Under the pieces are notes generated by a model. The model saw only the letters and a program-made list of their open reading frames with translations. It was not told where the DNA came from and did no database searches. A stretch of DNA of 64,000 nucleotides from Rebecca billardiae RCC1528 (lineage: Eukaryota; Protista; Haptophyta), in NCBI GenBank assembly GCA_965240325.2, contig OZ251224.1:4030001-4094000 (forward strand), given 5' to 3'. Positions 6,929 through 61,405 of this stretch are shown one piece after another (position 1 is the first letter of the stretch; every line of letters starts with the position of its first letter). Both the position numbers and the translations under genes were made by a program.

Positions 6929-7155
<227 letters not shown>

Positions 7156-7901
7156 GAATGGTGAGCCATATGTCATATACGATTCGCGTAGTATAACTAT
7201 ATATACGTCTTTGTAGCTTATAAAGTTAAGCGTCAGCTTGAACTATACTACGGTATCTTTGGTGCGATAACTACACCGAAGACTGGTCGTGGCAGCTTAA
7301 TTGTCGTCAGAAGATATAACTATGGCTCAATTACAACCAGAGTTCACAGTCACACACCACTACGCGTCGTGCCCGGACTGCGGTTGCACGCCGCAGATGA
7401 CTCACCGTGGATTCTTGCCTCTTGGAGTCAGGAGTGCGGCGGCACTGGCGCCGCCGCAAGGAAACGCGCATATCAGCAGGCGGCTCAGCAGTCGCAGCTG
7501 CATCACATTCCACCCAACCCACCCTACACAGTACACTGTACACAAGTAACTCACAGTAAGTAAACAGGGAAGCAGCAGTGCAGTCATATCGTCTACTCAT
7601 CGTAGGACGTGTTGTCCCCACCTGAGTTAAGGCAGACAAGGCATAGGGTCCGTGCTCATAGCCACTATTCAGTATTCACTCAGCCGATAATACACGGATG
7701 TCGGATCAGCAGCTGGATATGTAGTTGCTGATTCTGACAGCCACGTCACTAGCGCGCTGTTGAGGCCCATTTGAGATGGGCGGCGCAGCTGACTCAGGCG
7801 GGGATCTGGTTGACCCAGATCCTCTGATTAGTGTGCAGTGTTGGATGGTGTCAATCACGCCTCGGCCTACTGTGGCGTGGCCCGTCTGCCCGGCCTCTAC
7901 A

Positions 7902-13293: not shown

Positions 13294-14489
13294 CAGGGAC
13301 CGTCGCTCGCACTTTCCGCGGCTGCGAGTAGAGTGAACTCGCACTCGCACTTTTGAGGGGACTTTGCGAGTGCACTGCGAGTTGAACTCGCAGGCCACTG
13401 GGCGGAATGGGCGGCTGCGAGTGCGAGTGCGAGTAAAGTGCGAGTCCCAACTCGCAAAGTGCGAGTCCCAACTCGCAAAGTGCGAGTCCCAACTGGCAAC
13501 GTGTCCGGGGGCGCAGCCCCCGGACACGCCCAGCGGGGGGTCCGGGGGGCCTCCCCCGGGGCCCCGCCGGCCTGAGGCGATGAAAATTTTTGGCCCTATT
13601 TGGCCCTATTAGAGCATGCCTTACACCCGACCCGCCGCCCTGACCACCCTGCCACCGCGCCTGCGTCGCCAGCTGTTTGTCGGCGCGCGACACCTTCTTG
13701 AAGCCCGCAGCGAGGAGGCCCGATTGCTTGAGCTGCTTCTCGACGGGCATACTCACCGACATGCCCACCTGCTGCATGGTCCGCTTCGCCCCCAGCGCTG
13801 CCTCGTCCGCCTTGATGGAGGCCTTCTTGCTGTACTCGGTCAGCGGGTGCATCGTCTTCAGGTGGTTGCCCGCGTTTGTGATCGTGAAGACCGACTTGCC
13901 CCCCTTCGAGCGCACCTTGTCGAGGGGGAGCGTGAAGCGCTGGCCGCATCCCGGCATGACGCACACGTGCGTGTACAGCTTCGGGTTGCTCGACTGACTG
14001 CCCACCTGAACGTACGAGAAGTCGGTCGGCGCCGCTTGCGAGATGGGGTGGACGTGCGTCCACAAGAGCGAGACACCTTTGCCGTTGGGGGGCAGATCGA
14101 GCCAGGCCGGGTCGATCACCCCGCGCTGGTTCGACAGCGACCAGACGGTGATCTCGGCAGCCGGCGCCGACGCAGGCGCCGAAGCGACCGGCGCCGCCGA
14201 TGAGCTCGCCATTTGCCGCCCTGGGCGGGGGCAGCGAGGCTTTGACGCTTTGTGACTCGCCTGCCGTGCAGGCGGTCACGAGGCCGCCCAGGGACTCGCA
14301 CTTCTGCTCGCGCCAACTCGCATACTCGCGCTAGACCGCACCTTGCGAGTACCTTTGCGAGTTGACTCGCAAGCCCGCTGGGCCGGATCGGCGCCTTGCG
14401 AGCGCGAGTGCGAGTGCCCTGCTCGCACTCGCGCTCGCGCCCTGCTCGCACTCGCACCGCGAGTGCCTCGCTGCGAGCACCAGCCCCTG
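13294..14489 (-). mobile_element. Non-autonomous hAT DNA transposon, copy 1 (1196 bp), with BED-finger transposase N-terminal remnant (ATG 14212)
   Basis: Ends CAGGG...CCCTG with imperfect TIR (CAGGGACCGTCGCTCGCA / CAGGGGCTGGTGCTCGCA). 8-bp TSD GGCAAATC at 13286-13293 and 14490-14497. Dense TGCGAG/CTCGCA subterminal motifs. ORF with W...CVMPGC...NAGNHLKTMHP. Confidence 0.92.
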
Positions 14490-14844
14490 GGCAAATCCCG
14501 AGGTCTGGACCGGTTGGTGGATTGGCAGCATTGTCGGCCGCCGCGCGACAGTACTTTTTAAAAATAACGATTTATTATTTCAATAAATAACCTACTTTAT
14601 TACTTAGCCAGCAGGTACTGTGTGACGTATCGAAATATCATGTCGCAGATTATTACGACAGCCGCCTTATAATCGTCGATCGCAGCACCTCATATCCCGC
14701 GCACCCACGATGCCCGCCACGGCCACGCCCGCCCACCGGCCCACGGGCACGGTGCGCGTGATTCGGTGACGGGACTTGCCGACTAGTGCCCGTGCCGTTA
14801 TTCTGAACAAGTACCTCAGGCGATGCAAATGCGCGCCGGCGCAC

Positions 14845-16300
14845 TCAGCTGCCGCCACCGCCGCTGTCATTGCCACGCCGCGCGCTGCCGCTTTCGCCGC
14901 CACCGGCCGCTGGTCTCCCCGAGAGCGGCGCAGCGCCCTCACCGGTGCGCGCGTCGACGGGGTCGGCAGGCGTGTCGCCGAGCGGCCGGCGCGCGTGCGC
15001 GGAGGCCGCGCTGCCCGGCGCCTCGTCCGCGCGGCCGCCGCGGGCGTCGGCGTCGCCCGCGTCCTTCGCGGCCTGCGCGTTGAACAGGTTGATGGGCGGG
15101 TCCCACACCGACAGCCCGATCCCGCCCGCGAGAATCCCCACGATGATCCCGAGCGAGGTCGTGATCGAGACCTCGACGCCGTAGTACTCGCCGATCATCT
15201 TGCTGCCCACAAAGCCAAGCACGAGCGCAACCGCCGGCTGGGGGGCGCAGCGCGCAGCGGAGGAGGGGGCAGGCGAGCGGAGGGCGGGGGCGTGAGCGGG
15301 CGTGCGCGGCGCGCGGCGGCGCGCGGCGCGGCGCGCGGCGCGCGCGTGCCTGCAGGTAGTCGAAGTCCGCCACCAGCCTGGAGAGGATGCGGTAGAGCGC
15401 GCGCAGCCCAAGGATGGCAAACACGTTGGACGAGAAGGCGATCAGCGGCACGTCCGTCACGCCCAGCACGGCGGGCACCGAGTCGACGGCGAAGATGACG
15501 TCGGAGACCTCGATGCACGCAAGCGCGACGAGCAGCGGCGTCGCGAGCCACTGCACGCCCGCCCCCTCCACCCCGTCCGCCGGCGGCGGCGCCTCCACCC
15601 AGAAGCGGTCGCCACACATCTCGTCCGTGGTCGGCAGCAGCCGCTTGCACAGGTTGACGACCGGGTTGTTGGTGAGGTCGGGCTCCTCGGGCTCGCTGAA
15701 GGACTCGGCGATGATCGAGAAGGAGGAGAGCAGCAGGATGCCCGCGAAGACCAGCAGCACCGGCCGGAACGCGTGCACCGCCTCCACGCCGAGCGAGATC
15801 ATGACGAGACGGAAGATGGCGGCCGCGGCGATGCCCCAGCGGAGGCACTTGCTCTGCGCATCGCCCACGACGCCGAAGTAGTCGAAGATGAGCTTGAAGA
15901 CGAAGAGGTTGTCTACCGAGAGGCTCTCCTCTATTACGTACCCGGCGAAGTACTGCGCCGCGTCCTCCTCGCCGCGCATCACCCAGATGCCTGCGCCAAA
16001 CGCCACCGCGAGCGCGACGATGATGAGCGTCTGCGTGATGGCCTCGCGGTAGCCCGCAGCGTCCTCGCCGTCGCCGGTGATCTCGGCGATCACCTCCTCA
16101 ACCTCGATCTCGTCATCATCCGCCGCAGCCAGCCGCAAGACGGCCCTGGGAGCCACCGGCAGGCGGCGCGCGCGCGCTGGCAGCGCCGAGGCGCGCACGA
16201 GCGCGCTGCTGTGGCAGAGCCCGCGAGGGTGCGCGACGGCCGTGCCGCGCGCGGCGAGCGCCAGCACGGCGAGAGCCGCGTGTACCGCCCCGGGCCGCAT
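14845..16300 (-). CDS. TERC: TerC family membrane protein, likely plastid-targeted; GC-AG intron 15238-15349
   Basis: YFAGYVIEESLSVDNLFVF and EVSDVIFAVDSVPAVLGVT...SNVFAILGLRALY motifs. Bipartite signal/transit-like N-terminus. Exon 2 continues PAVALVLGFVGSKM. Confidence 0.92.
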
Positions 16301-16523
16301 CCCGCGCGCGGCGCGCGGCGGCGCTCCTGGCGAAGAGCGCCGCCTGCTCGCGGCGAACAGCCTCGTGGCGGGCCGCCGGCACTTGCACAAGGCTGTGGGC
16401 GCGGAGCCGCAAGCGCCGCGGCTGCTTCATCAACGCACAGCAAGCGGTGTCGGCAGAAAATGCTGATACGCTGACGACGCGAAGAATTTGAAATTCGTCC
16501 GCAGCGCGGAGCGGGGAAAATAC

Positions 16524-17699
16524 CAGGGACCGTCGCTCGCACTTTCCGCGGCTGCGAGTAGAGTGAACTCGCACTCGCACTTTTGAGGGGACTTTGCGAG
16601 TGCACTGCGAGTTGAACTCGCAGGCCCACTGGGCGGAATGGGCGGCTGCGAGTGCGAGTGCGAGTAAAGTGCGAGTCCCAACTCGCAAAGTGCGAGTCCC
16701 AACTGGCAACGTGTCCGGGGGCGCAGCCCCCGGACACGCCCAGCGGGGGGTCCGGGGGGCCTCCCCCGGGGCCCCGCCGGCCTGAGGCGATGAAATTTTT
16801 TGGCCCTATTTGGCCCTATTAGAGCATGCCTTACACCCGACCCGCCGCCCTGACCACCCTGCCACCGCGCCTGCGTCGCCAGCTGTTTGTCGGCGCGCGA
16901 CACCTTCTTGAAGCCCGCAGCGAGGAGGCCCGATTGCTTGAGCTGCTTCTCGACGGGCATACTCACCGACATGCCCACCTGCTGCATGGTCCGCTTCGCC
17001 CCCAGCGCTGCCTCGTCCGCCTTGATGGAGGCCTTCTTGCTGTACTCGGTCAGCGGGTGCATCGTCTTCAGGTGGTTGCCCGCGTTTGTGATCGTGAAGA
17101 CCGACTTGCCCCCCTTCGAGCGCACCTTGTCGAGGGGGAGCGTGAAGCGCTGGCCGCATCCCGGCATGACGCACACGTGCGTGTACAGCTTCGGGTTGCT
17201 CGACTGACTGCCCACCTGAACGTACGAGAAGTCGGTCGGCGCCGCTTGCGAGATGGGGTGGACGTGCGTCCACAAGAGCGAGACACCTTTGCCGTTGGGG
17301 GGCAGATCGAGCCAGGCCGGGTCGATCACCCCGCGCTGGTTCGACAGCGACCAGACGGTGATCTCGGCAGCCGGCGCCGACGCAGGCGCCGAAGCGACCG
17401 GCGCCGCCGATGAGCTCGCCATTTGCCGCCCTGGGCGGGGGCAGCGAGGCTTTGACGCTTTGTGACTCGCCTGCCGTGCAGGCGGTCACGAGGCCGCCCA
17501 GGGACTCGCACTTCTGCTCGCGCCAACTCGCATACTCGCGCTAGACCGCACCTTGCGAGTACCTTTGCGAGTTGACTCGCAAGCCCGCTGGGCCGGATCG
17601 GCGCCTTGCGAGCGCGAGTGCGAGTGCCCTGCTCGCACTCGCGCTCGCGCCCTGCTCGCACTCGCACCGCGAGTGCCTCGCTGCGAGCACCAGCCCCTG
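16524..17699 (-). mobile_element. Non-autonomous hAT DNA transposon, copy 2 (1176 bp)
   Basis: Near-identical to 13294-14489. It has its own 8-bp TSD, GAAAATAC, at 16516-16523 and 17700-17707. Confidence 0.92.
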
Positions 17700-34523: not shown

Positions 34524-37176
34524 CACAGTGCGCTAACCGGCACCGAAAGTTGAATTGGCAGAATCGGCCGATTCCGCGATCAGGGACGTTTTCGCGGAGG
34601 CCGGCCGCCATCGCTGGCGCAGCCATCCGCGCGCGAACACGCGCGCGCAGCGACGCCAGCCGCATGGCGTGCGCCAAGACGGGGGGCGGCTGAGTTCTGC
34701 ATCGTCTACGCTCGTTCGGGCTCGCGGGTTATGCCTCCCATCGCGGCCGCCTCCGTCCGCCTTTGACCAGAGTGCGCGTGCAGGTGCGCCAGCAGTCTGC
34801 GACATCGGCTCCCGCGCGCCGCGCCACACCGCGGCTGACAGGGGGGTCTAGGAGGGAATCGCAGAAAGTTACGTGGCTGAAATTGTTCGGTGTACACGCA
34901 TCATCAAACCTAGCACAGCTGCGTTTCGCCGTTGACGAGCTGCACCCCCCCTCAATTCGCGGGCTCTCCGCGCTCGCTTCGCGAGCAGGAACATCTGAGA
35001 TCCGCACGCGAACATGCGCGCGCAGAGACGCCAGCCGCATGGCGTGCGCCAAGACGGGGGGCGGCTGAGTTCTGCATCACCTACGCTCGTTCGGGCTCGC
35101 GGGTCATGCCTCCCATCGCGGCCGCCTCCGTCCGCCTCTGACCGGAGTGCGCGTGCCGGGTGCTCGGCAGCCTGCGCGCGCACCTTGCGCGCGCCGCGCC
35201 ACACGGCGGCTGACAGCGGGGTCTAGGAGGGCATCGCAGAAAGTTACACGGCTGAAAGTGTTCGCTGTACGCGTATGACCAAGTGCATCACAGCTGCGTT
35301 CCACCGTTCACGAGCTGCACCCCCTTCCATTCGCAGGCGCGCCGCGGCCGCGCTCGCGCAGGCGCATGGGATCCACGTGTTGGCTCGATCATCGGGATCA
35401 AGCGGGCTGCGCAGGCAGTGGGCTGGCGTACGAGCTCACTACACGCGCAGTGTCAGAATACGCTGCATCAGATGTGCCCCGTCGGCTGTGCTGCTGAGCA
35501 TACGGCACACGACGGGCACTCGAGCAGTGTGGCTGGCGATGAGCCCGAGCATCCCAGCTGGCGTGCGAGTGGCTTACTGGGCGCAGCTGATGCACGAGCA
35601 CCCTGCGTTGCACACCGAAGGTGCCAGAAGCACGCGTTCTTGCCATCCAGTCGTATCGTCCGGCCCCCATGCGCTCAAGGCGGGGGAGGAGATCTGCACG
35701 CGCACGCGCGCGCTGGAGATTCCCGAGGCCGCGCATCTGGGCGCTCGGGTTGCCTCCACAGGGGCACCTGAGCTTGACTCGAGGGCTGAGTGGAGCAGGC
35801 GACGAAACACGCACGACGAGTGGCCGGCGTGATTGTCTGGGGTCTCCTCGTGGCGCGCTTGCACGTTTTCGGCGCATCACCACTGTGCTGACTTCGCGGC
35901 GGCGCCCCGACCGCGCCCCGAGTGACCGTGTCATCGGCTGACCCGCTGACTGCACCGTACGTCCGTACCAGGCGCAGCTGAGACTCGCGCAGAGTAGCGC
36001 GGCGCCTATGGCTATAGCCCGGTCGTAGCTTGCGCGTATAGGAGTAGCAGTTGTCGTCATGCGACGCCTGCTCGCCTGCTGCGCTAATAAAATTTGATGA
36101 CTGGCCGCCCGCGGACCAAACCTACTGTGCGCACGCAGCAGGATTCCACTTCCAGCGACGCGGGCAGCGTGCCCGCGCGTCGACCCGACGGCCAGCAGTC
36201 AGCTCGAGTCGCGTCGGCGGACGGCTGGCTGGCGGATGAGTCGGCAGGCTTGGGGAGCCCGCGGGCGCGGCACGCCACGCTGATTGCATGCTGCTGTAGT
36301 TGCGCATCGCCTCTTCGTAGACGCGCTGCCTCACTCTCAGCTGAGCTCGGGCCGCCGGGTGCGACGACGGCTGGCGGGAGCCGCTGACAGTGACGTCATG
36401 ACGACCGACCGCGAACTCCGACCTGGCTGACGGCAGCGCGAGCAGCACAGCACGGCGCGGCGCGATGCGATCTGCGGCGCGGCGTGGCGGTGGGCCCGCG
36501 TGACACGCTGCCAGCGCCACTGGCGTGCGAGACCCCGCCCCGTCTCCGCAGCGCCGCGCTCACATGTGACCACGACCTGCACAACACGGGCCGTGGTCAG
36601 AAAGCCGTCGCGCGCGCGTTCATTTACGCGGCACCTTGGTGCTGAGCGCCAGCCGAGAGGTAGTGGCGACGACGACATCCACTCCAGGTCGATGTGCACC
36701 TGCGTCTGTGCCCGGGTGCCGCTGGGATGCGATTGAGGATGAGATTGCGGCAGCATGCCCTGATATGAGCAGCGGTCAGTTTGGAGAGCGTGAGTCGTGC
36801 CAGCACGCGAGAGCAGACGTGCACGTTTCGAGCAGCCGAGCTGGACCATGAAAGTCAGCAATCCAGCGCGCATGCCGCGCACCCGAAAGAGCCGACCATC
36901 TCCGCATGCTCAGAGCAGCCGGCGGCGCGCTCGCAGAGTCGCTTCGGAGTCGCTTTGCGGCCGTCTCGGCGCGTGTCATGTGGAGCTGCTCTCGAGGCGA
37001 AGGAGGAGGAAGGCGTTGATCAGCGCCGCTGAAGACTAGGACTAGGCTCTCTCGCGAGGTCCGCCGCGCGGTCTACGCCGCCGATCACGGCCTCTTGAGG
37101 ACGGTCGGCCAGCGCGCGCGTCGGCAGCCATCGTGACGCCTCTCATTCAACTTTCGGCCCGTGTTAGCGCACTGTG
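34524..37176. mobile_element. Non-autonomous CMC/Transib-like TIR element with CACAGTG termini
   Basis: Left end CACAGTGCGCTAACCGGCACCGAAAGTTGAAT; right end (reverse complement) CACAGTGCGCTAACACGGGCCGAAAGTTGAAT. CT flanks both ends (possible 2-bp TSD). No recognisable transposase. Confidence 0.72.
34625..35325. repeat. Diverged tandem duplication with about 375-bp period inside the CACAGTG element
   Basis: GACGCCAGCCGCATGGCGTGCGCCAAGACGGGGGGCGGCTGAGTTCTGCATC...GAGCTGCACCCC occurs in both units. Confidence 0.85.
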
Positions 37177-37862
37177 CTTGCACTTTGAGCCGAACATTGC
37201 TGATGATGCTAAGTCGTTGTATATATATATATATAGTGCGGAATGTGCGCGCACGGCGGCGCCCGCCGCGGCTTGGCAACACGTTCGGGCCACGCCGGGG
37301 CCTGGCGACTCGAGTGGCTCCGGACGGGGCATTGCCATTGGCAGACGGCACTCGGGCCGTGGCCATGCCCGCCGCTCGGGCGGCCTGCGCCGGTTTAGTG
37401 ATGGTGTCCGTAGTAAAACTGCCTCTGGTGCCGAATCTGGAGGCCGAGCGCCGTGCCTCAGCACTGCTGCCACCTGCCAGTAGCACCGCTGCCACCCTTC
37501 ATCCCTTGCCTCGGCTGGAACTGCTGGAACAGGCCGTTGGGCCGAGGGGCGCGGGGCGTGCAGCCGGACGGAGCCCGCTGCTCGACTCCGGCCTGGAGGA
37601 GTCGAGGCGCGCGCCGCCGGGCGAGCTTGCCGCGCACGCCACAGGGAGCCGTGGCTGCCCACGCCTCTGTACAGCGCAGCGGCCGTGCGGCTGCGGGGTG
37701 CGGGAAATAAAATAAGTTGGCTACCTTGCGGGAAGCAGCCGGGGGACGCGGCGCCTCGGCCGCGCCGCTCACGCTCAGTCGTCGGCTGAGCCCTCCTCCT
37801 CGTCCTCGTCGTTGTCGTCGCCGTCCCCGTCCCCGCCGGCGCCGTCCGCGTCGTCGTCACCG

Positions 37863-37894
<32 letters not shown>

Positions 37895-40800
37895 CGAGTC
37901 GACGATGGCCGGCTTGGCCGCCGCGGCGCGCGCGGCCTCCACCGCCTGCGCCCGGGAGCGGCCAGCGCGGCGCCGCAGGTGTGTGTGTCGCGCGCGTGAG
38001 CAATCGGCGCGCGTCGTGTGCGCGCGCGCGCGCCGCGCGCCGTCGCCGTGGCGCGCACCTTGTCGTACTGCGCCTTGGCCTCCTTCGCCTGCGCCTCGTA
38101 CTTGGCCTTCTTCGCCTCGTCCAGCCCCTTCCACTTGTCCCTGAGGTGCTGCTTGAGCTCGGCCGCGCCCACCTCCGGGTTCTTCTCCTNNNNNNNNNNN
38201 NNNNNNNNNNNNNNNNNNNNNNNNNNNNNNNNNNNNNNNNNNNNNNNNNNNNNNNNNNNNNNNNNNNNNNNNNNNNNNNNNNNNNNNNNGTTCGGTGTAC
38301 ACGCATCATCAAACCTAGCACAGCTGCGTTTCGCCGTTGACGAGCTGCACCCCCCCTCAATTCGCGGGCTCTCCGCGCTCGCTTCGCGAGCAGGAACATC
38401 TGAGATCCGCACGCGAACATGCGCGCGCAGAGACGCCAGCCGCATGGCGTGCGCCAAGACGGGGGGCGGCTGAGTTCTGCATCACCTACGCTCGTTCGGG
38501 CTCGCGGGTCATGCCTCCCATCGCGGCCGCCTCCGTCCGCCTCTGACCGGAGTGCGCGTGCCGGGTGCTCGGCAGCCTGCGCGCGCACCTTGCGCGCGCC
38601 GCGCCACACGGCGGCTGACAGCGGGGTCTAGGAGGGCATCGCAGAAAGTTACACGGCTGAAAGTGTTCGCTGTACGCGTATGACCAAGTGCATCACAGCT
38701 GCGTTCCACCGTTCACGAGCTGCACCCCCTTCCATTCGCAGGCGCGCCGCGGCCGCGCTCGCGCAGGCGCATGGGATCCACGTGTTGGCTCGATCATCGG
38801 GATCAAGCGGGCTGCGCAGGCAGTGGGCTGGCGTACGAGCTCACTACACGCGCAGTGTCAGAATACGCTGCATCAGATGTGCCCCGTCGGCTGTGCTGCT
38901 GAGCATACGGCACACGACGGGCACTCGAGCAGTGTGGCTGGCGATGAGCCCGAGCATCCCAGCTGGCGTGCGAGTGGCTTACTGGGCGCAGCTGATGCAC
39001 GAGCACCCTGCGTTGCACACCGAAGGTGCCAGAAGCACGCGTTCTTGCCATCCAGTCGTATCGTCCGGCCCCCATGCGCTCAAGGCGGGGGAGGAGATCT
39101 GCACGCGCACGCGCGCGCTGGAGATTCCCGAGGCCGCGCATCTGGGCGCTCGGGTTGCCTCCACAGGGGCACCTGAGCTTGACTCGAGGGCTGAGTGGAG
39201 CAGGCGACGAAACACGCACGACGAGTGGCCGGCGTGATTGTCTGGGGTCTCCTCGTGGCGCGCTTGCACGTTTTCGGCGCATCACCACTGTGCTGACTTC
39301 GCGGCGGCGCCCCGACCGCGCCCCGAGTGACCGTGTCATCGGCTGACCCGCTGACTGCACCGTACGTCCGTACCAGGCGCAGCTGAGACTCGCGCAGAGT
39401 AGCGCGGCGCCTATGGCTATAGCCCGGTCGTAGCTTGCGCGTATAGGAGTAGCAGTTGTCGTCATGCGACGCCTGCTCGCCTGCTGCGCTAATAAAATTT
39501 GATGACTGGCCGCCCGCGGACCAAACCTACTGTGCGCACGCAGCAGGATTCCACTTCCAGCGACGCGGGCAGCGTGCCCGCGCGTCGACCCGACGGCCAG
39601 CAGTCAGCTCGAGTCGCGTCGGCGGACGGCTGGCTGGCGGATGAGTCGGCAGGCTTGGGGAGCCCGCGGGCGCGGCACGCCACGCTGATTGCATGCTGCT
39701 GTAGTTGCGCATCGCCTCTTCGTAGACGCGCTGCCTCACTCTCAGCTGAGCTCGGGCCGCCGGGTGCGACGACGGCTGGCGGGAGCCGCTGACAGTGACG
39801 TCATGACGACCGACCGCGAACTCCGACCTGGCTGACGGCAGCGCGAGCAGCACAGCACGGCGCGGCGCGATGCGATCTGCGGCGCGGCGTGGCGGTGGGC
39901 CCGCGTGACACGCTGCCAGCGCCACTGGCGTGCGAGACCCCGCCCCGTCTCCGCAGCGCCGCGCTCACATGTGACCACGACCTGCACAACACGGGCCGTG
40001 GTCAGAAAGCCGTCGCGCGCGCGTTCATTTACGCGGCACCTTGGTGCTGAGCGCCAGCCGAGAGGTAGTGGCGACGACGACATCCACTCCAGGTCGATGT
40101 GCACCTGCGTCTGTGCCCGGGTGCCGCTGGGATGCGATTGAGGATGAGATTGCGGCAGCATGCCCTGATATGAGCAGCGGTCAGTTTGGAGAGCGTGAGT
40201 CGTGCCAGCACGCGAGAGCAGACGTGCACGTTTCGAGCAGCCGAGCTGGACCATGAAAGTCAGCAATCCAGCGCGCATGCCGCGCACCCGAAAGAGCCGA
40301 CCATCTCCGCATGCTCAGAGCAGCCGGCGGCGCGCTCGCAGAGTCGCTTCGGAGTCGCTTTGCGGCCGTCTCGGCGCGTGTCATGTGGAGCTGCTCTCGA
40401 GGCGAAGGAGGAGGAAGGCGTTGATCAGCGCCGCTGAAGACTAGGACTAGGCTCTCTCGCGAGGTCCGCCGCGCGGTCTACGCCGCCGATCACGGCCTCT
40501 TGAGGACGGTCGGCCAGCGCGCGCGTCGGCAGCCATCGTGACGCCTCTCATTCAACTTTCGGCCCGTGTTAGCGCACTGTGCTTGCACTTTGAGCCGAAC
40601 ATTGCTGATGATGCTAAGTCGTTGTATATATATATATATAGTGCGGAATGTGCGCGCACGGCGGCGCCCGCCGCGGCTTGGCAACACGTTCGGGCCACGC
40701 CGGGGCCTGGCGACTCGAGTGGCTCCGGACGGGGCATTGCCATTGGCAGACGGCACTCGGGCCGTGGCCATGCCCGCCGCTCGGGCGGCCTGCGCCGGTT

Positions 40801-41267
40801 TAGTGATGGTGTCCGTAGTAAAACTGCCTCTGGTGCCGAATCTGGAGGCCGAGCGCCGTGCCTCAGCACTGCTGCCACCTGCCAGTAGCACCGCTGCCAC
40901 CCTTCATCCCTTGCCTCGGCTGGAACTGCTGGAACAGGCCGTTGGGCCGAGGGGCGCGGGGCGTGCAGCCGGACGGAGCCCGCTGCTCGACTCCGGCCTG
41001 GAGGAGTCGAGGCGCGCGCCGCCGGGCGAGCTTGCCGCGCACGCCACAGGGAGCCGTGGCTGCCCACGCCTCTGTACAGCGCAGCGGCCGTGCGGCTGCG
41101 GGGTGCGGGAAATAAAATAAGTTGGCTACCTTGCGGGAAGCAGCCGGGGGACGCGGCGCCTCGGCCGCGCCGCTCACGCTCAGTCGTCGGCTGAGCCCTC
41201 CTCCTCGTCCTCGTCGTTGTCGTCGCCGTCCCCGTCCCCGCCGGCGCCGTCCGCGTCGTCGTCACCG

Positions 41268-41299
<32 letters not shown>

Positions 41300-41594
41300 C
41301 GAGTCGACGATGGCCGGCTTGGCCGCCGCGGCGCGCGCGGCCTCCACCGCCTGCGCCCGGGAGCGGCCAGCGCGGCGCCGCAGGTGTGTGTGTCGCGCGC
41401 GTGAGCAATCGGCGCGCGTCGTGTGCGCGCGCGCGCGCCGCGCGCCGTCGCCGTGGCGCGCACCTTGTCGTACTGCGCCTTGGCCTCCTTCGCCTGCGCC
41501 TCGTACTTGGCCTTCTTCGCCTCGTCCAGCCCCTTCCACTTGTCCCTGAGGTGCTGCTTGAGCTCGGCCGCGCCCACCTCCGGGTTCTTCTCCT
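34885..41594. other. Apparently identical 3305-bp duplication (34885-38189 = 38290-41594) across a 100-N gap (38190-38289); probable assembly overlap artefact
   Basis: The ORF sets are identical at offset 3405, and both copies abut the N gap exactly. Confidence 0.85.
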
Positions 41595-42342
41595 GCAGCG
41601 CGGGCAGCCGCGCGTCGAGGTACAGCTCGAGCGGGGGCTTGGGCTTGGGCACGGAGGCGGCGGGGTCCTTCTTGGCGGGGGAGGCGGGCTTCGCGCCCTT
41701 GCCCGCCTTGCTCCCGCCCGCCGCCGTCTTCGCGCGCTTCGCGCCCTTCTCGCCGGCGGCCGCCGCCTTGGGCGAGGCGGCGCGCTTCGACGCGCTCGGC
41801 TTGGTCTTGGCGGCCTTGCCCTTCGTCTTCTTCTTCTTGGCGGGCGTGGCGGAGCGCTTGCGCGGCGCGGAGGGCGCGCGGCCCGTGTCGGCGGGCCTGT
41901 CCAGGAACGTGAGGAGCCGCTCGATCAGCTCGTCCTTCGTGCCCGCGCGCTCGAGCGTGCAGAGCGTGCACAGCTCCTTGATCTCAGGCAGCCCGCGCTT
42001 CTTCAGGAACGCGCTGCGCTTGGCGAGCTCGGCCTCGCGCTCGTCCTCGCCGAGGGCGAAGCCGGAGAAGTCGCGCAGGTGCGCCTTCACCTTGGCCGCC
42101 GCGCCGCGCCGGGCGAACGCCGCGTGGTACAGCGCCTGCAGCAGCGGCTCCTTCGAGCTGTGCTTGGTCACGCCCGCGTTCACCGCCTCGATGTCGCCGA
42201 GCCGCGTGCCCTTGCCCGGGACGACGCGGAACTCCTCCTTCTCGGCGACCTGGATCGTGAACTGCTCCACCGTCTTGCGCTGCCGCGCGCCCCGCACGAC
42301 GCCCGCCGGCTCCGCGGCCGCCGGCGCGCCGTCCTCGGCCAT
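41180..42342 (-). CDS. DEK: DEK-like chromatin protein with SAP, HMG box and acidic tail; intron 41351-41463
   Basis: RQRKTVEQF...GKGTRLGDI...LRDFSGF (DEK N-terminal region), LKELC...GTKDELIERLLTFL (SAP), PKPKPPLELY...KWKGLDEAKKAKYE (HMG box), poly-Asp tail. The 3' part is also present at 37775-38189. Confidence 0.8.
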
Positions 42343-42417
42343 GTCGGGACGCGGCGCGCTGCAGCGAAAGCCACTGGCACGGTGGCTGCCCAGCACACGC
42401 GGGCTGCCACTGGACCC

Positions 42418-42498
42418 ATTCTATGATTTAACGACACAGGTAGGACGGCGCAGGTCTCCTGATTCGTCGTCGGCAGTGCCCGATCGTCGACACGAAGT
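42418..42498 (-). repeat. About 80-bp repeat, inverted copy of 55828-55907
   Basis: ACTTCGTGTCGACGATCGGG(C/G)ACTGCCG(A/C)CGACGAATCAGGAGACC...GTCCTACCTGTGTCGTTAAAT(C/A)ATAGAAT is present at both sites. Confidence 0.85.
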
Positions 42499-46372: not shown

Positions 46373-46751
46373 CGAGGTGCGCGGGGTAGGTGCTGCTCGG
46401 CTCTGGACCACGATCGTCACGACACGGCTGAGCCGGAGGCGGTACCTGCACGGCGCGTCATTGGCCCCGCGGCGCCGCTCGGAACAGTGAACGGCTGATC
46501 GGCCCAAGGTCTGTCGCCTGACCTCAGAGACGTTCACTCGCAGTGGGTCCGGGTGATGATGAGCCTGGCACGCGCCGCGCGGTCGCGGCAGCCAGCAACC
46601 GACGACGTTAACAGCGAGCGGTCAGAAATGAGCGCCGTGCGACGCGGCAGCATGAAACTGAAGCCATCGCGGTCAAGCGTCCGCAACAAAAAGATCATCG
46701 TACGTTAATATCTTTGGGCGGACAAATAAGGACACAGCTAGGTAAAAAACG

Positions 46752-46823
46752 AGCCGATTGTGAGAGTCGAACTCACGACCTAGTGATTACGGGTCACTCG
46801 CTCTGCCCCTGAGCTAAATCGGC
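46752..46823 (-). tRNA. trnT: tRNA-Thr(CGU)
   Basis: GCCGATT acceptor stem, GCTC/GAGC D stem, AGTGA-CCCGTAA-TCACT anticodon arm, GTGAG-TTCGACT-CTCAC T arm, and a T6 Pol III terminator downstream. Confidence 0.93.
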
Positions 46824-46832
46824 ACGACGTAA

Positions 46833-48611
46833 TCATTTCCGCAACCTAGTCGTGGGTATACATACAAAATATCTTCCGAAGTGCGGCCGCAACTCCAGAG
46901 CTTCCGAGGCCACTTCACCGAAATCCAGGTTGGGGAGGATCTCCGCTGCACTGGTGGGGAGGATGTCATCCTCCCCGCTCGCCACGGCTGGGGAGGATGT
47001 CCGCCGCGCTGTCCGGTCTTTCGCCGCTGACAAAACTTTCGAAAACGAAAGTCGCGCTATGGCGGACCCGGTGTTCCCGCCCGGCGGCGAAAGGGGCGCG
47101 GGGCCGGTGGCTCGCGATCCGAAGGGCAGTAGCTCGCGACCTCGCTTGGGCGGTGGCAGCGGCGCTGTGGCACGGCGTGTACCATCCGCGCGGCTGTGCG
47201 CGATCGCGCGGTCCCGTTCGTCGCCACGCCGCGCGCGACCGTTCACGCCACAGTCTTTCCGCACTGGCATGCACCCGTTGCAAGCGCATGACGGCGGAGA
47301 GCTCAGAGAGCCCGTCACGCGCGTGACGACCGTGTGGGATGGGTTGTGCCGATATGAAGGCTGCCCTTCGTAGGCTTTCTGATGAGCCCATCCAACGTTC
47401 AGACCATTCCTAACTGCTGAAAGATGAGTCATCGCCTGCCACACGGCCATGGAGTTGTGGACAGTACAGCAGCCGTCCATGATCCGCATGCCCGCCTCAT
47501 GGGCCGGCGCGTGCCTCCCTGAACATGAAGACAAGCTGTACAACCCATCCCACACGGTCGTCACGCGCGTGACGGGCTCTCTGAGCTCTCCGCCGTCATG
47601 CGCTTGCAACGGGTGCATGCCAGTGCGGAAAGACTGTGGCGTGAACGGTCGCGCGCGGCGTGGCGACGAACGGGACCGCGCGATCGCGCACAGCCGCGCG
47701 GATGGTACACGCCGTGCCACAGCGCCGCTGCCACCGCCCAAGCGAGGTCGCGAGCCACTGCCCTTCGGATCGCGAGCCACCGGCCCCGCGCCCCTTTCGC
47801 CGCCGGGCGGGAACACCGGGTCCGCCATAGCGCGACTTTCGTTTTCGAAAGTTTTGTCAGCGGCGAAAGACCGGACAGCGCGGCGGACATCCTCCCCAGC
47901 CGTGGCGAGCGGGGAGGATGACATCCTCCCCACCAGTGCAGCGGAGATCCTCCCCAACCTGGATTTCGGTGAAGTGGCCTCAAACGCCTTCCGGTCTTTT
48001 CAGATTTGCGCTTTTCAAAACGACGAAATGTTCTGCGCTCTGCATTTTGTCTGCATGTTCAAATGTCCAACGGCAAAGCGCGGCGGATGGCGGCTTCGCC
48101 GCCGCATGGGCGGGCGATGGCGTTGCCCGCATAAAACGTGCGTCGGAGGCAAGGAAGCGGGCAGATGGCGCGTCGCACGCGTCGTGGAACTCGGTCGCGA
48201 CGCTCGCCAGCCTCAGCGCGCGCGGCGAAGCCACGTCCATGGGCGCCCAGCGTGCAGGCGGCACGGTCACGCCCGGCTCGGCCGCGGCGCCACCGGCCTC
48301 GCACGCGTCCTTGCCGCGCGAAAGGGCATCCCAGCTGCGGTCATTCGACTTGTGCGTCAGGAGCAGTGTGCCAGCTAGCCGACGCGCACGCGCCGCGAGC
48401 TGCACGGCGTGTGCAAACGTAGCCCGCCGAGCGTGCGCCGATGCGGCATAGCGGGAGAGGGCCCAGATCCGCGAGGCGACTCTTGTCAGTGGCCCTCACC
48501 GTAGCTTCGTGATCTACGAAACTACTTACTAGCGTCCTCGCGTTTGTCCAGCTGGCGCAACGCTCCGAGGCGGCAAACGAGTCCGCGACGTCCGCCCGGC
48601 ACAGACCCGCG
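46833..48611 (-). pseudogene. Degraded coding remnant interrupted by foldback element A
   Basis: Removing the foldback, the 6 extra nt and one CTTCC gives in-frame ...FVVLKSANLKRP-EALELRPHFGRYFVC...stop. Upstream pieces are frameshifted. Family not identified. Confidence 0.35.
46906..47981. mobile_element. Foldback element A: 442-bp inverted arms (46906-47347 / 47540-47981) and 192-bp spacer
   Basis: Arms differ at only one position noticed. GAGGCC...GGCCTC termini. CTTCC is duplicated at 46901-46905 and 47988-47992, after 6 extra nt. Confidence 0.85.
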
Positions 48612-49294
48612 ATGGACCAAGGACCCCAGTTTCTCCCGGGTAACAATTCCTCTAACTATTACTCACCCCCGTCGCGCCCGTGAAAAGTGTTACGGGCCGA
48701 GCGTAGCAGTAACATGTAACACTCTCACGCCGGACTCACCCGGACTGCGGGTGTCTGACCGAGCCACGCCGCCTGACTAAACCCTGGCTGAGCACACTGT
48801 CAGCCATCACTTTCACTTGAGACCGTCGGTCTCGGATTCTCGCGGCCCGTTGCCGGCCAGTCCGGGTCCGGGGCCGGGGCCGGGCGGGTTTCGCTGGGCC
48901 CCGGGAGGAGGCCCCCTGTAACAGCTGTAACACCGTAACACGTAACAAGTCCGGCGCGGCGAGTCCGGGAGCCGACCGGTCCAGGTCCGGGGCGGGCGGG
49001 CCGCCCGGGCCGGGCCCGGGAGGAGGCCCCCTGTAACAGCTGTAACACCGTAACACGTAACACAATGGCGCCGCTCGGCCGCGGCCCGTCGGCCCGGTGA
49101 AAAAATGGCGGCGGGGCGCGCGGCGCGCAGCGTCGCGCTCGGTGCGCTCGGCGGGGCTCGAGGAACGACTGCGGACGGGCGAGCGCGCACGGGCGCGAGC
49201 ACGAGTCGCGTCGCCCGCGCCCCTCCCCGAGCGACCTGCCGCCGCGTCTCGCGACGATGGCGCAGTGGCCGCTCGTCCGTGGCCGCGTGAAAAA

Positions 49295-50542
49295 ATGGCG
49301 GCGGGGCGCGCGTCGCGCAGCGTCGCGCGCCCAGGCGAGGCGTGCACGCACGAGGTTGTGTTCCTGGCAAGTGGCTCGCAGCGTACGTTCGGCGGCCGGC
49401 TGCACGTGCCGAGCAGCCGCCTGCGCGAGCTCGATGCACTCGTGGCCGCGCAGCACTTGGTGCACGGCGCGCGCGCGCCCATGGTGGTCGAGGCGCTCGG
49501 CGCGCGCGCGCGCTTCGTCGTCGATGTGGACTGCGCCTTCAGCACCGCGCCCTCCCCCTCGGACGTGGCCGCACTGCTCGTCGGCCTCTACCGCGTCGCG
49601 GAGGAGCATCTGCCCGTGCCCGTTCCCGTGGCTGGGCGCGTCGTGTACGTCTCGGCGCGCGCGCCCAGCCCCGCGACCGCCGCCGGCTCGGCGCCGGGCG
49701 TGCGCCGAGCCGGGATTCACGCGACATGGAACGACTCGGCCATCATCTCGGCCGCTGAGGCGGCGCGCATCGCGCGCGTCCTGCACGACTGGGCGCGCTC
49801 GCAGCCGCGGCCGCCGTGCTGGCACAAGCTCGAGATCGACTGCAGCATCTACGGGGCGGGCCTGCGCCTGCCGTTCACGGCCAAGTCGGACGGCGGCCCG
49901 CCCTACCTGCCGGCAGCCGTCGTCGCCGCCGACGAGCACGGCGCCGTGCGCTGCGCGTGGCTCGACGCGCTGCCTGCGCAGCACGCGCTGCGGCGGCTCG
50001 CGGCGGATGGCGCGCGCTGGCTCTCTCGCGCGCGGCTGCGCACCGAGCTGGTCGAGTGGAGCGCGCCGCCGCCCGCGCCCGGCCGACCGGCTGTGCCGGC
50101 GACGAGCGCCGCCGGTCGCGATGCGGCGGCCGGCGCGCGGCGCGCGGCGCTGGTCGGCTGGCTCAACGAGCAGCTGCACGCGCACGCACGAGTCTCTGGC
50201 TCGGCCGAGCGCTGGCCGCGCATCGTGCAGGTGTTTGCTGGGAGCACGGCGCACGGCCCGGTCGCGACGTGCTCGACCGCCAGCAGGTGGTGCGAGTGCA
50301 AGGGCGCCGAGCACGCCACCGTCTTCTACTTCGCCAAGTCCGACGGCCTCGACCTGTGCTGCGCCGACGAGGCGTGCGTGCCAGCGCGCGGCGCCGGGTA
50401 CGCGCGCGCCGTCTGCCTGCGCAGCATGCTCTTCTGCGCGGGCGGCGGCCGCACGGGCGCGCCGCCCCGCAGCGCCGAGTTTGCCTCGCGCTTCCACGCC
50501 GCGTTCGCCAGCGGCCGTGCCGCGATGGGCCCGGCGCGTTGA
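49295..50542 (+). CDS. Archaeo-eukaryotic primase/PrimPol, NCLDV (A468R-like) type, with C-terminal UL52/PrimPol zinc finger, 415 aa
   Basis: AEP motif I FVVDVD, motif II GIHATW, motif III EIDCSIY, then GLRLPFTAK...PYLP. Zn finger SRWCECKGAEH...CADEAC (C-x6-H...C-x4-C). N-terminal GGRLHVP...VVE. Intronless. Confidence 0.85.
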   Translation: MAAGRASRSVARPGEACTHEVVFLASGSQRTFGGRLHVPSSRLRELDALVAAQHLVHGARAPMVVEALGARARFVVDVDCAFSTAPSPSDVAALLVGLYRVAEEHLPVPVPVAGRVVYVSARAPSPATAAGSAPGVRRAGIHATWNDSAIISAAEAARIARVLHDWARSQPRPPCWHKLEIDCSIYGAGLRLPFTAKSDGGPPYLPAAVVAADEHGAVRCAWLDALPAQHALRRLAADGARWLSRARLRTELVEWSAPPPAPGRPAVPATSAAGRDAAAGARRAALVGWLNEQLHAHARVSGSAERWPRIVQVFAGSTAHGPVATCSTASRWCECKGAEHATVFYFAKSDGLDLCCADEACVPARGAGYARAVCLRSMLFCAGGGRTGAPPRSAEFASRFHAAFASGRAAMGPAR

Positions 50543-51072
50543 CGACGCGGCGGCCGTGCAGCGCGCATGCGCCCGCGCGCCGTCGCCGTCGCCGCCGCCG
50601 CCGCCCCGCCGCCGCCGCCGCCGCCGCCGCGCCCACCTCGCGCCGTCGGCCGACGGGCTCGGCAAACGAGGCGGCGTGCAAACAAGGACTCGGCGCTCGC
50701 GCCGGGGTCGGTGCAGCGCGACGCCACGCGAACCGCCGCGGTGCTCGCGCCCGTGCGCGCTCGCCCGTCCGCGGGCGCTCCTCGAGCCCCGCCGAGCGCA
50801 CCGAGCGCGACGCTGCGCGCCGCGCGCCCCGCCGCCATTTTTTCACGCGGCCACGGACGAGCGTCCACACCGCCATCGTCGCGAGACGCGGCGGCAGGTC
50901 GCTCGGGGAGGGGCGCGGGCGACGCGACTCGTGCTCGCGCCCGTGCGCGCTCGCCCGTCCGCAGTCGTTCCTCGAGCCCCGCCGAGCGCACCGAGCGCGA
51001 CGCTGCGCGCCGCGCGCCCCGCCGCCATTTTTTCACCGGGCCGACGACGGGCCATGGCCGAGCGGCGCCATT

Positions 51073-51870
51073 GTGTTACGTGTTACGGTGTTACAGCTGT
51101 TACAGGGGGCCTCCTCCCGGGCCCGGCGGCCCGCCCGCCCCGGACCTGGACCGGTCGGCTCCCGGACTCGCCGCGCCGGACTTGTTACGTGTTACGGTGT
51201 TACAGCTGTTACAGGGGGCCTCCTCCCGGGCCCGGCGGCCCGCCCGCCGCGGCCCCGGACCGGCCGGCTCCCGGACTCGCCGCGCCGGACTTGTTACGTG
51301 TTACGGTGTTACAGGCACAGCTGTTATACAGGGGGCCTCCTCCCGGGCCCGGCGCGGCCGGCCCGCCGGCAGCCCCGGACTCGGACGAGCCGGACTTGTT
51401 ACGTGTTACGGTGTTACAACTGTTACAGGGGGCCTCCTCCCGGGCCGCGAGGCCCGGGCCCGCCGGCAGCCCCGGACCCGGATGACGCGCCGGACTTGTT
51501 ACGTGTTACGGTGTTACAGCTGTTAACAGGGGGCCTCCCGTCCCGGGCCGCCGGCGCGGCCGGCCCGCCGGCAGCCCCGGACTCCGGGACGAGCCGGACT
51601 TGTAGTACGTGTTACGGTGTTACAGCTGTTACAGGGGGCCTCCTCCCGGGCCGCGAGGCCCGGGCCCGCCGGCAGCCCCGGACCCGGACGCGCCGGACTT
51701 GTTACGTGTTACGGTGTTACAGCTGTTACAGGGCGGGCCTCCTCCCGGGCCCGGCGCGGCCGGCCCGCCGGCAGCCCCGGACTCGGACGAGCCGGACTTG
51801 TTACGTGTTACGGTGTTACAGCTGTTACAGGGGGCCTCCTCCCGGGCCGCGAGGCCCGGGCCCGCCGGCC
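51073..51870 (+). repeat. Tandem array of eight about 100-110-bp units, each with four TGTTAC-type motifs; two inverted units at about 48900-49063
   Basis: Core TGTTACGTGTTACGGTGTTACAGCTGTTACAGGGGGCCTCCTCCCGGG at about 51075, 51184, 51293, 51398, 51498, 51605, 51701 and 51800. Confidence 0.95.
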
Positions 51871-52604
51871 CAGGAGTGCCGCCGCGGACCGACCGCGCCG
51901 CTGACTCAGGACGCCGACGGCGTCACGGCGGCGATGCGGCGCGCCGCCGCGCGGCCGCCGCCGCGCGCGCGCGCCTGACGCGCGCGCTGTCGAGCCGCAG
52001 TCCCTCGCGTGCCTGCGCGGGCGGGTGACCGGGGTGTTACCATCGCTACGGCCGACAGGGCCAAAAATCCCTATAGAAAACATTTCCCCTATGAAGGTAA
52101 TATGGGTAGCAGAAACTCGGGTCCATACCCCCGTGATGACGATGATGATCGACTCACGGCCACGCTAGCGGCGCCGGCAGCCGCACTCGGCGACTGACTC
52201 GGCGGCTCGCCGGGCCGCCCACTCGTAGGCGCACTGCGCGCAGGTTTACAGCCGATGAGCAGTGGTTCGCTCATTCGCTCGCCCGTGCTGCGGCGCAGCG
52301 CGACGAGCGAGTGCATCAGCATGCCGGTGGTGCTGGCCGGCGGCGCCGCGGCGCCGCCGCCGCGGCGGCTGAGGTAGGTCACTAGGTGCCGGCCCATCAC
52401 TATTCACTAGGTGGCGCCGTGGCGGCGTTCTCCGTCGCGCCGCAAAGCTGGCGGCATTCATGTCGCGCGCGTAGTCGCGGCGCGCGCCAGCTTGCCCGCG
52501 CCGCGCGCGGGAGCGTACTTGTCTAGGTATACAGCCGGCGCGCGCGCTACTAGCGCGCGCGGGCGGCCCACGTGGCACGCGCGCTGCGCACGCGCGCGTC
52601 GCGC

Positions 52605-54689: not shown

Positions 54690-55743
54690 GAGGCCGCTCG
54701 AGCGACTTCGTGTCTGGCGAGGCAGATCGCGCCAGTGCGTGGCGAGGCAGACGCTCGCCTGCCTCGCCGCTTGGCGAGGCAGCTAAGCTAGTAACGCCGC
54801 GGCCGAACTTTACGAAAGCCAAATGTCTGCCGGTGCGCCGCCCGTCTTTTGCGCACGGTGACAAGGGCGCGCGAGGGCGCTTCCTCACGATCCCGAAGAG
54901 CGCTGCGCGCGGCGTCGCGTTGGCGGCGGCAGCGGCGCTGGGGTGTATCTTGCCCATTCTGCGTGGCGGCGCGCTCTCATGACGCCTCGGCCGCCGCCAC
55001 GCCATGCGCGACCGGGCGTGTCGCCTTCTTGACGGGCAGTGCACACGCCCTTGCAAGCGCACAGCCGTGAAGAGCCGAGAGCGTCCGTCGCGAGCACGCC
55101 GCCCACGCGGGATGCGTTGCCAGGGCTATTCGTATGACACTGGGTGCTCGCGCTCTGGCATGTGCGAGCCAGGATGACCATGGGTAGCAGCTACGATGAG
55201 CACTGCTAACCTGCATTTCAGCCGATGACATCCTCTCGTTCAGCGATCTTGACTGCTCTGAACGCATGGCGAACTCGGCGAAGCGCATGCGCAAGGTGGC
55301 TTCGGTGACAGCATAACGCATCCCGCGTGGGCGGCGTGCTCGCGACGGACGCTCTCGGCTCTTCACGGCTGTGCGCTTGCAAGGGCGTGTGCACTGCCCG
55401 TCAAGAAGGCGACACGCCCGGTCGCGCATGGCGTGGCGGCGGCCGAGGCGTCATGAGAGCGCGCCGCCACGCAGAATGGGCAAGATACACCCCAGCGCCG
55501 CTGCCGCCGCCAACGCGACGCCGCGCGCAGCGCTCTTCGGGATCGTGAGGAAGCGCCCTCGCGCGCCCTTGTCACCGTGCGCAAAAGACGGGCGGCGCAC
55601 CGGCAGACATTTGGCTTTCGTAAAGTTCGGCCGCGGCTTTACTAGCTTAGCTGCCTCGCCAAGCGGCGAGGCAGGCGAGCGTCTGCCTCGCCACGCACTG
55701 GCGCGATCTGCCTCGCCAGACACGAAGTCGCTCGAGCGGCCTC
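54690..55743. mobile_element. Foldback element B: 429-bp inverted arms (54690-55118 / 55315-55743) and 196-bp spacer
   Basis: Arms differ at only one position noticed. GAGGCC...GGCCTC termini. Exact 5-bp TSD TGTAC at 54685-54689 and 55744-55748. Confidence 0.9.
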
Positions 55744-55827
55744 TGTACTGTACAGTTCACTACTGTAAGAATAAGAGACACAGTAGTAGTACGATCGCGA
55801 GCGGTGCAGGACTTGCTAAACGGTATA

Positions 55828-55907
55828 CTTCGTGTCGACGATCGGGGACTGCCGCCGACGAATCAGGAGACCCGCGTCGTCCTACCTGTGTCGTTAAATA
55901 ATAGAAT
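55828..55907 (+). repeat. About 80-bp repeat, inverted copy of 42418-42498
   Basis: Matches 42418-42498 in reverse complement and ends in AAATAATAGAATAAT. Confidence 0.85.

Positions 55908-61343: not shown

Positions 61344-61405
<62 letters not shown>
61344..61405. repeat. (TA)n microsatellite
   Basis: Seen directly in the sequence. Confidence 0.98.

Follow-up and report, generated by a model that had tools for sequence, protein, structure and literature searches.

What is a solitary primase gene doing between long inverted repeats in the genome of a haptophyte? The question is raised by a locus at positions 48612-52126 of a 64-kb stretch of DNA from Rebecca billardiae RCC1528 (assembly GCA_965240325.2, contig OZ251224.1, positions 4,030,001 to 4,094,000 of the forward strand; the whole stretch is referred to here as the window, and positions are counted from its first letter). 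The original prediction, made from the sequence without database searches, regarded this locus as a new mobile or replicating element, namely a 3.5-kb quasi-palindrome whose only gene encodes a primase-polymerase (PrimPol) of the giant-virus type. The comparisons described below firmly place the predicted protein as a divergent, catalytically complete primase-polymerase of the giant-virus/herpesvirus clade of archaeo-eukaryotic primases (AEP), and the gene is framed by a real foldback-type repeat that provides its start. For the locus as a whole, a virus-derived primase gene within a foldback-type repeat is the best account, to which we give about an even chance. Mobility of the whole unit, now or in the past, is a possibility that we rate below that, and replication of the unit via its own primase appears unlikely.

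The primase gene (49295-50542, plus strand) is intact and intronless, and runs from an ATG to a stop codon over 415 amino acids (aa). Its GC contents at the three codon positions, 0.75, 0.63 and 0.92, match those of the neighbouring host genes and mark this frame as the true one; the long overlapping open reading frames (ORFs) show no such pattern. The predicted protein consists of a stand-alone AEP primase-polymerase domain (approximately residues 13-225), followed by a zinc finger of the UL52 type (CHC2) and, in the last 50 residues, by a low-complexity C-terminus. The catalytic motifs, positioned by the columns of a family alignment of 12 sequences (A3), are DxD (D77/D79), GxH (G140/H142), hD (D182) and RLPxxxK (R191 to K197), and the finger reads C333-x6-H340...C356-x4-C361. 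Among the 12 sequences, D182, Y186, G189, L190, R191, K197, C333, H340, C356 and C361 are invariant, and D77, D79, G140 and H142 are conserved in at least 90%. A Pfam scan of the ORFs from 46.8 to 52.1 kb that are 80 aa or longer found no further domain. The single intronless ORF, the four catalytic motifs with the finger, and the claim that no second recognisable gene (transposase, recombinase, helicase, PolB or capsid) is encoded were thus all borne out, the last within the reach of this Pfam scan.

The assignment to a family was reached through relatives. A search of 1.84 billion representative proteins, with no length limit and E values up to 0.001, returned six relatives of the primase, of which the two farthest (P0005 and P0006) exceed the curated cut-off of the Pfam family PF23162 (AEP_C962R); P0006 also touches PF03121 (Herpes_UL52). 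A further search started from P0006 added seven members, all with PF23162 and two of them from green algae. In the 12-sequence family, nine members reach the AEP_C962R cut-off and three relatives, the window protein not being one of them, match PF03121. When the full-length GC-rich members (the window protein, P0001 and P0005; alignment A6) were compared with 11 viral-type members (A4), hhalign gave a probability of 98.9% with an E value of 1.8e-17 over 302 columns, spanning query residues 13-362, and the probability was 95.2% once GC-rich fragments were included. Comparison of folds by Foldseek pointed the same way. The best matches in the PDB were UL52 of herpes simplex virus 1 (HSV-1) and the PrimPol of African swine fever virus (ASFV); in BFVD, three unnamed proteins of 412-480 aa came first, followed by C962R-like, D5-like and herpesvirus primases, and the matches spanned many giant viruses. 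Profile searches of the PDB from the primase family yielded noise only. Separately, a weak match to DUF7739 was dismissed (20.7 bits against a cut-off of 27).

The profile-profile and fold comparisons, together with the motifs, therefore agree with the predicted membership in the AEP clade of nucleocytoplasmic large DNA viruses (NCLDV) and herpesviruses, finger included. From its sequence, the window protein is taken to belong to the C962R-type AEP primases and to work like them. As for the phycodnavirus primase A468R, to which the original prediction had likened the N-terminus, it was never returned as a named match, the three best BFVD matches carrying no name.

Could the ORF instead be a vertically inherited host PrimPol? 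The cellular enzyme does combine the same AEP domain with a UL52-type finger. Nevertheless, no cellular PrimPol was present among the six relatives from the 1.84 billion representatives at E values up to 0.001, no PrimPol entry appeared among the top 50 fold matches in the PDB, which comprised viral primases and unrelated proteins, and the closest relatives are rare and mostly broken. We regard vertical inheritance as the least probable of the explanations considered here.

The repeat frame is the other part of the answer. The left (48897-49328) and right (50805-51233) near-identical arms pair in inverted orientation over 435 alignment columns, comprising 419 matches, 7 mismatches and 9 gap columns, with a score of 759 against 31 +/- 4 in shuffles; the ~430 bp of near-identical inverted arms that had been predicted are genuine in this sense. 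Both arms run into arrays of tandem units of about 100-115 bp, each ending in a 32-nt block that holds four TGTTAC sites spaced by 7, 8 and 9 nt. The arrays are unequal, with two units on the left against eight on the right. The left array (48841-49062, minus strand) has units of 107-115 bp with their 32-nt blocks at 48916-48947 and 49031-49062, and the right array (51061-51869, plus strand) has units of 97-109 bp, the last being 71 bp, with pairwise identities of 0.62-0.96. Two 2-kb bins over the locus contain 41 GTTAC/GTAAC sites, whereas every other bin of the window contains 0-3. The locus shows one of the features of foldback elements, long inverted arms built of tandem subrepeats and unequal in length. 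The 32-nt block had no match in IMG/VR, and the array motif was absent from all 82 related loci. Two readings of these sites were tried and rejected: a GTAAC cluster in the viral locus L014 proved to be an unrelated 11-nt microsatellite, and a reading of the TGTTAC block as Myb sites, made by eye, was dropped as only one of the four sites fits.

Inside the arrays lies a 190-bp unit in which a run of A directly precedes an ATG. This A-run/ATG feature occurs in four copies, starting at 49097 and 49287 on the plus strand and at 50825 and 51015 on the minus strand. The left side carries one full unit (49091-49280) and the first 48 nt of a second (49281-49328), both on the plus strand, and the right side carries the mirror image on the minus strand, one full unit (50863-51052) and a partial one of 122 nt (50741-50862). 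After 48 nt of the second left unit the sequence turns into primase, so the ATG and codons 1-11 of the gene are repeat-derived. The other three copies of this stretch each begin a short, unrelated ORF (61, 61 and 170 codons) without a family match; the right-hand minus-strand ATGs at 51028 and 50838, with ORFs of 61 and 170 codons, respectively, face the 3' end of the primase gene. It is hence doubtful that the N-terminus is a family hallmark, as had been proposed, since residues 1-11 are encoded by the repeat and the first conserved column of the family alignment is H19. Between the two sets of units lies a unique central segment of 1.4 kb (49329-50740) that carries the primase and, 3' of its stop codon, a CCG microsatellite (50573-50633).

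Where the unit ends is less distinct. The left outer region (48612-48840) has a GC content of 0.58 and scattered GTTAC/GTAAC sites, and in the right outer region (51870-52126) the GC content drops from 0.83 to 0.49. Within these regions, 48666-48761 and 51886-52060 are weakly similar to the array units (z 3.3-3.8). The former, with a z of 3.8 against -0.4 for an upstream control, is probably a decayed, third unit of the left array, as judged by this similarity. Outside 48612 and 52126 the sequence bears no likeness to the array units; given the weak likeness inside these bounds, the arrays probably fade out near them.

The termini of the original prediction were not confirmed. The proposed ATGGACC/GGTCCAT ends are at chance level, 7-base inverted matches between the flanks numbering 36 where 36.2 are expected, and aligning the outer 300 bp locally in inverted orientation gave a best match that falls within the range of shuffles and lies away from the proposed termini. 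A direct match at six of seven positions, the proposed target-site duplication, does adjoin these ends, but a 7-bp terminal match with an adjoining 6/7 direct match arises in 8% of dinucleotide shuffles (p ~0.08).

Two perfect palindromes lie on either side of the primase unit, at distances of 0.6 and 2.6 kb. The first (46906-47981) has arms of 442 nt around a loop of 192 nt, and the second (54690-55743) has arms of 429 nt around a loop of 196 nt, with TGTAC on both sides; the arms are 100% identical within each palindrome. Between the two palindromes, the arms are homologous at only 64% (z ~13), and each palindrome has its own set of three to four short subterminal direct repeats. One loop may be flipped with respect to the other. 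The pair has the look of a foldback family in which homogenisation acts on the arms of each copy, and the identity within palindromes set against 64% between copies points to a process that homogenises arms in this genome, which deserves a separate study. The arms of the primase unit have no sequence similarity to either palindrome. We also observed an 81-nt inverted repeat (42418-42498 and 55827-55907), whose copies are 94% complementary and 13.3 kb apart; its right copy lies 84 bp beyond the second palindrome, and it encloses the transporter, TBP and tRNA genes, both palindromes, the primase unit and the lipoxygenase gene.

What do the relatives tell us about the history of the gene? The closer ones (P0001-P0005) are 33-49% identical to the window protein and come from contigs of 1.2-2.6 kb, whose GC contents are mostly 70-73% (57% for L011, the contig of P0004). 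Judged solely by counts and outer bounds, P0001 and P0005 can each be followed in one frame along most of the query, albeit with a poorly conserved zinc-finger region in P0005; at the P0002 locus the match is confined to query residues 178-389, in one frame, the P0003 locus carries one in-frame stop and has homology in two frames, and in the P0004 locus the homology is split over two frames. Of the five GC-rich relatives, three are thus truncated or broken. The run accessions behind P0003 and P0005 are neighbouring ones. In the contig of P0002 (L002), the sequences flanking the gene are alike in both inverted and direct orientation, with scores of 47 and 49 against 25 +/- 3, reached by none of 300 shuffles, and there is an A-run motif resembling that of the window. 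Positions 1-24 of L002 look like a library adapter with an AT-rich stretch next to it, and the left end of this contig may be non-genomic.

More distant relatives are spread over viruses and algae. IMG/VR holds 70 loci encoding them, including contigs of giant-virus metagenome-assembled genomes of up to 199 kb, and direct alignment of the window protein with a few of these gave 20-25% identity. In L004, the viral-type relative adjoins genes for a capping enzyme, a NUDIX hydrolase and TFIIS. An order of NUDIX hydrolase, small primase and an ORF of 135-143 aa recurs in marine metagenome contigs (L004 and L006-L009), with a DUF5832 gene nearby. Among green algae, relatives were found in the assemblies of Tetrabaena socialis and Edaphochlamys debaryana (P0009 and P0011). 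A profile scan (A2) returned four distant relatives from marine metagenomes, none from IMG/VR and none from a collection of bacterial and archaeal genomes. An alignment-based word search, in which GC-rich words saturate the candidate list, returned only two relatives that were already known.

The surroundings of the primase are those of a host chromosome. The window has a GC content of ~70%, and it encodes eukaryotic proteins (ATG14, an HMG-box protein, a Sel1/MYND protein, a GT90 glycosyltransferase, a nucleoside transporter, TBP and a lipoxygenase) as well as a tRNA-Thr, which together identify it as nuclear DNA of a GC-rich eukaryote, probably a microalga. Exact look-ups of the primase and of eight neighbouring ORFs in the protein collection returned no match. 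The tRNA gene (46751-46823, minus strand, anticodon CGU) is the only one in the window and lies 83 bp from the first palindrome. The neighbours of the primase (the nucleoside transporter, TBP, tRNA-Thr, lipoxygenase and GT90 genes) are all host genes, and no block of giant-virus hallmark genes, which would mark a giant endogenous viral element (GEVE), was found around the primase among the annotated neighbours. Host-like codon usage and host-only neighbours indicate a solitary gene outside any large viral insert, as had been supposed. Elsewhere in the window are two tandem segmental duplications of 100% identity, one at about 34885-41700 with a period of 3405 bp, which doubles the HMG-box gene (ORFs 37147-38457 and 40552-42396), and the other at 13395-16965 with a period of 3210 bp; these are either recent, real duplications or assembly artefacts. 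A 108-bp periodic repeat lies within the Sel1-repeat/MYND gene (5636-6583), and long CTAT/GT and AT microsatellites coincide with dips in GC content (6929-7160 and 61344-61405).

How does the locus compare with known systems? The protein finds its closest counterparts in the C962R-like primases of giant viruses (PF23162 plus a UL52-type finger), with which it shares the domain order, the length class of 330-450 aa, the DxD, GxH, hD and RLPxxxK motifs, the CHC2 finger and, as kin in fold, the N-terminal domain of the ASFV PrimPol and the herpesvirus UL52. It is nevertheless only 20-30% identical to them and by itself falls below the Pfam threshold, and the gene is GC-rich, host-like in codon usage and solitary, whereas the viral genes stand beside those for NUDIX and capping enzymes and lack inverted arms. 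As a giant-virus-type gene in a eukaryotic nuclear genome, with kin in the Tetrabaena and Edaphochlamys assemblies, it resembles the genes of GEVEs, from which it differs in its missing viral neighbours, its host-like composition and its dedicated repeat frame.

The frame itself recalls foldback elements. Those of the Drosophila FB family have long inverted arms of tandem subrepeats, often unequal, and sometimes a coding loop. The primase unit likewise has unequal arms of tandem subrepeats and a unique centre with a sole gene, and two true foldback palindromes stand close by; unlike foldback elements, its loop encodes a primase rather than a transposase, and its termini and target-site duplication are undefined. 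A DNA transposon with terminal inverted repeats is a poorer match, as such repeats are not defined here and the ORFs of the unit contain no transposase or recombinase domain. Neither does the unit, at ~3-3.5 kb, resemble a Polinton or polinton-like virus, for which a capsid, packaging ATPase, polymerase or TVpol-helicase module would be expected and was not found. The transpovirons of mimiviruses are linear, plasmid-like DNAs of ~7 kb with terminal inverted repeats (PMC5499653, PMC7031253), and they carry a fusion of a superfamily 1 helicase with an inactivated polymerase as well as a Zn-ribbon gene (PMC5499653). The primase unit is similarly small, has inverted repeats on both sides and is linked to giant viruses through the ancestry of its gene. 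However, it is chromosomal and ameliorated to host composition, and neither the helicase/polymerase fusion nor the Zn-ribbon gene was found among its ORFs, so that the suggestion of a transpoviron-like satellite fails on gene content.

Several observations count against our account, in its identification of the gene as well as in its treatment of gene and repeat as a unit. Taken alone, the window protein matched no Pfam AEP family at E values up to 1, no PHROGs family and no PDB sequence, and confidence in its AlphaFold models is low (pLDDT 54 and 59). The coding sequence is all that the window shares with the relatives' loci, the arms having no match in their flanks. Flanking repeats are missing from L005, the other GC-rich relative whose flanks could be used, and neither repeats nor arms flank the viral and green-alga relatives. 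The termini and the target-site duplication are at chance level, the locus is present in one copy within the window, and the Pfam scan found no transposase, recombinase or replication-partner gene in the ORFs of the unit. A promoter role of the 190-bp unit, with antisense transcription from its right-hand copies, would follow from the layout.

Against this background, the locus might be read as an integrated giant-virus satellite or as a minimal replicon that primes itself. DNA synthesis would then be started by the primase on the arms, and the TGTTAC arrays would be origin-like sites of binding or initiation, in the manner of iterons or of the repeat-rich inverted termini of large DNA viruses. 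That the primase is the sole gene and retains every catalytic residue, that its nearest characterised relatives are viral, and that the arms carry arrays of a short motif seen nowhere else in the window would suit such a replicon. Helicase, polymerase, capsid and integrase genes, in contrast, were not found in the ORFs of the unit; codon usage is host-like rather than virus-like, the array motif occurs neither in IMG/VR nor in the 82 related loci, the viral relatives have no such arms, and the ends are undefined. All in all, a self-priming replicon or satellite strikes us as improbable.

A static host locus is a better contender, albeit one that we still hold to be less probable than the account preferred here. 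It would comprise an old, possibly domesticated viral primase in a region of tandem amplification and local inverted duplication, with no discrete element at all. The single copy in the window, the host-like GC at third codon positions (GC3) and the ends at chance level speak for such a locus; the other local duplications and palindromes of 100% identity in the window, and the absence of flanking repeats from L005 and the viral relatives, fit it as well. What it explains less readily is that the gene stands sharply at the centre of the repeats, which use a motif unique to the locus, that the start of the gene is made from a repeat unit, that a relative as divergent as that in L002 also has flanking repeats, and that decay has affected most of the GC-rich relatives, which is not the pattern of a conserved host gene. 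The perfect palindromes and identical tandem duplications could also reflect assembly problems, from which one might suspect the inverted arms themselves. The arms, however, differ from each other (in the mismatches and gaps given above, and in two against eight units), unlike a mirrored misassembly, and the nearby palindromes are homologues of 64% identity, not something that an assembler invents. We consider an artefact highly improbable.

The account that we prefer, a virus-derived primase gene within a foldback-type repeat, may be pictured as follows. The gene would descend from a giant-virus primase and then have resided for long in GC-rich genomes, for which its host-like GC3 of 0.92 is counted, and it would belong to a small family in which some copies are intact and others decayed. 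A foldback-type repeat would now house, or have captured, the gene, its units providing promoter and start. The arms may have arisen by tandem amplification and inverted duplication, and either a recent origin or gene conversion would have kept them alike. The protein, if expressed, would synthesise primers and short stretches of DNA; the right-hand promoter copies would yield antisense transcripts across the primase gene, and the TGTTAC arrays may serve as protein-binding sites. Hints of an element are the locus-specific motif arrays, the three decayed relatives out of five, the flanking repeats of L002 and the nearby palindromes, and a mobile or replicating element is compatible with this architecture, from which the reading draws its support. 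It is attractive to speculate that a foldback unit with a giant-virus-type primase as its sole gene, copied or mobilised by the primase acting on the TGTTAC arms, alone or helped by an infecting giant virus, represents a new class of elements, of which the decayed GC-rich relatives would be dead copies, but we think this unlikely to be the case.

If the primase is an endogenised viral gene, it adds a rare and deeply divergent lineage to the giant-virus/herpesvirus primase clade, and shows that a gene of this kind has been preserved undamaged, with codon usage like that of the host, inside a cellular genome. If, on the other hand, the repeat frame and the gene truly belong to a single element, this would be the first in eukaryotes to have a primase as its only gene, and it would bear on the kinship of small DNA replicons, satellites of giant viruses and cellular PrimPol-type enzymes.

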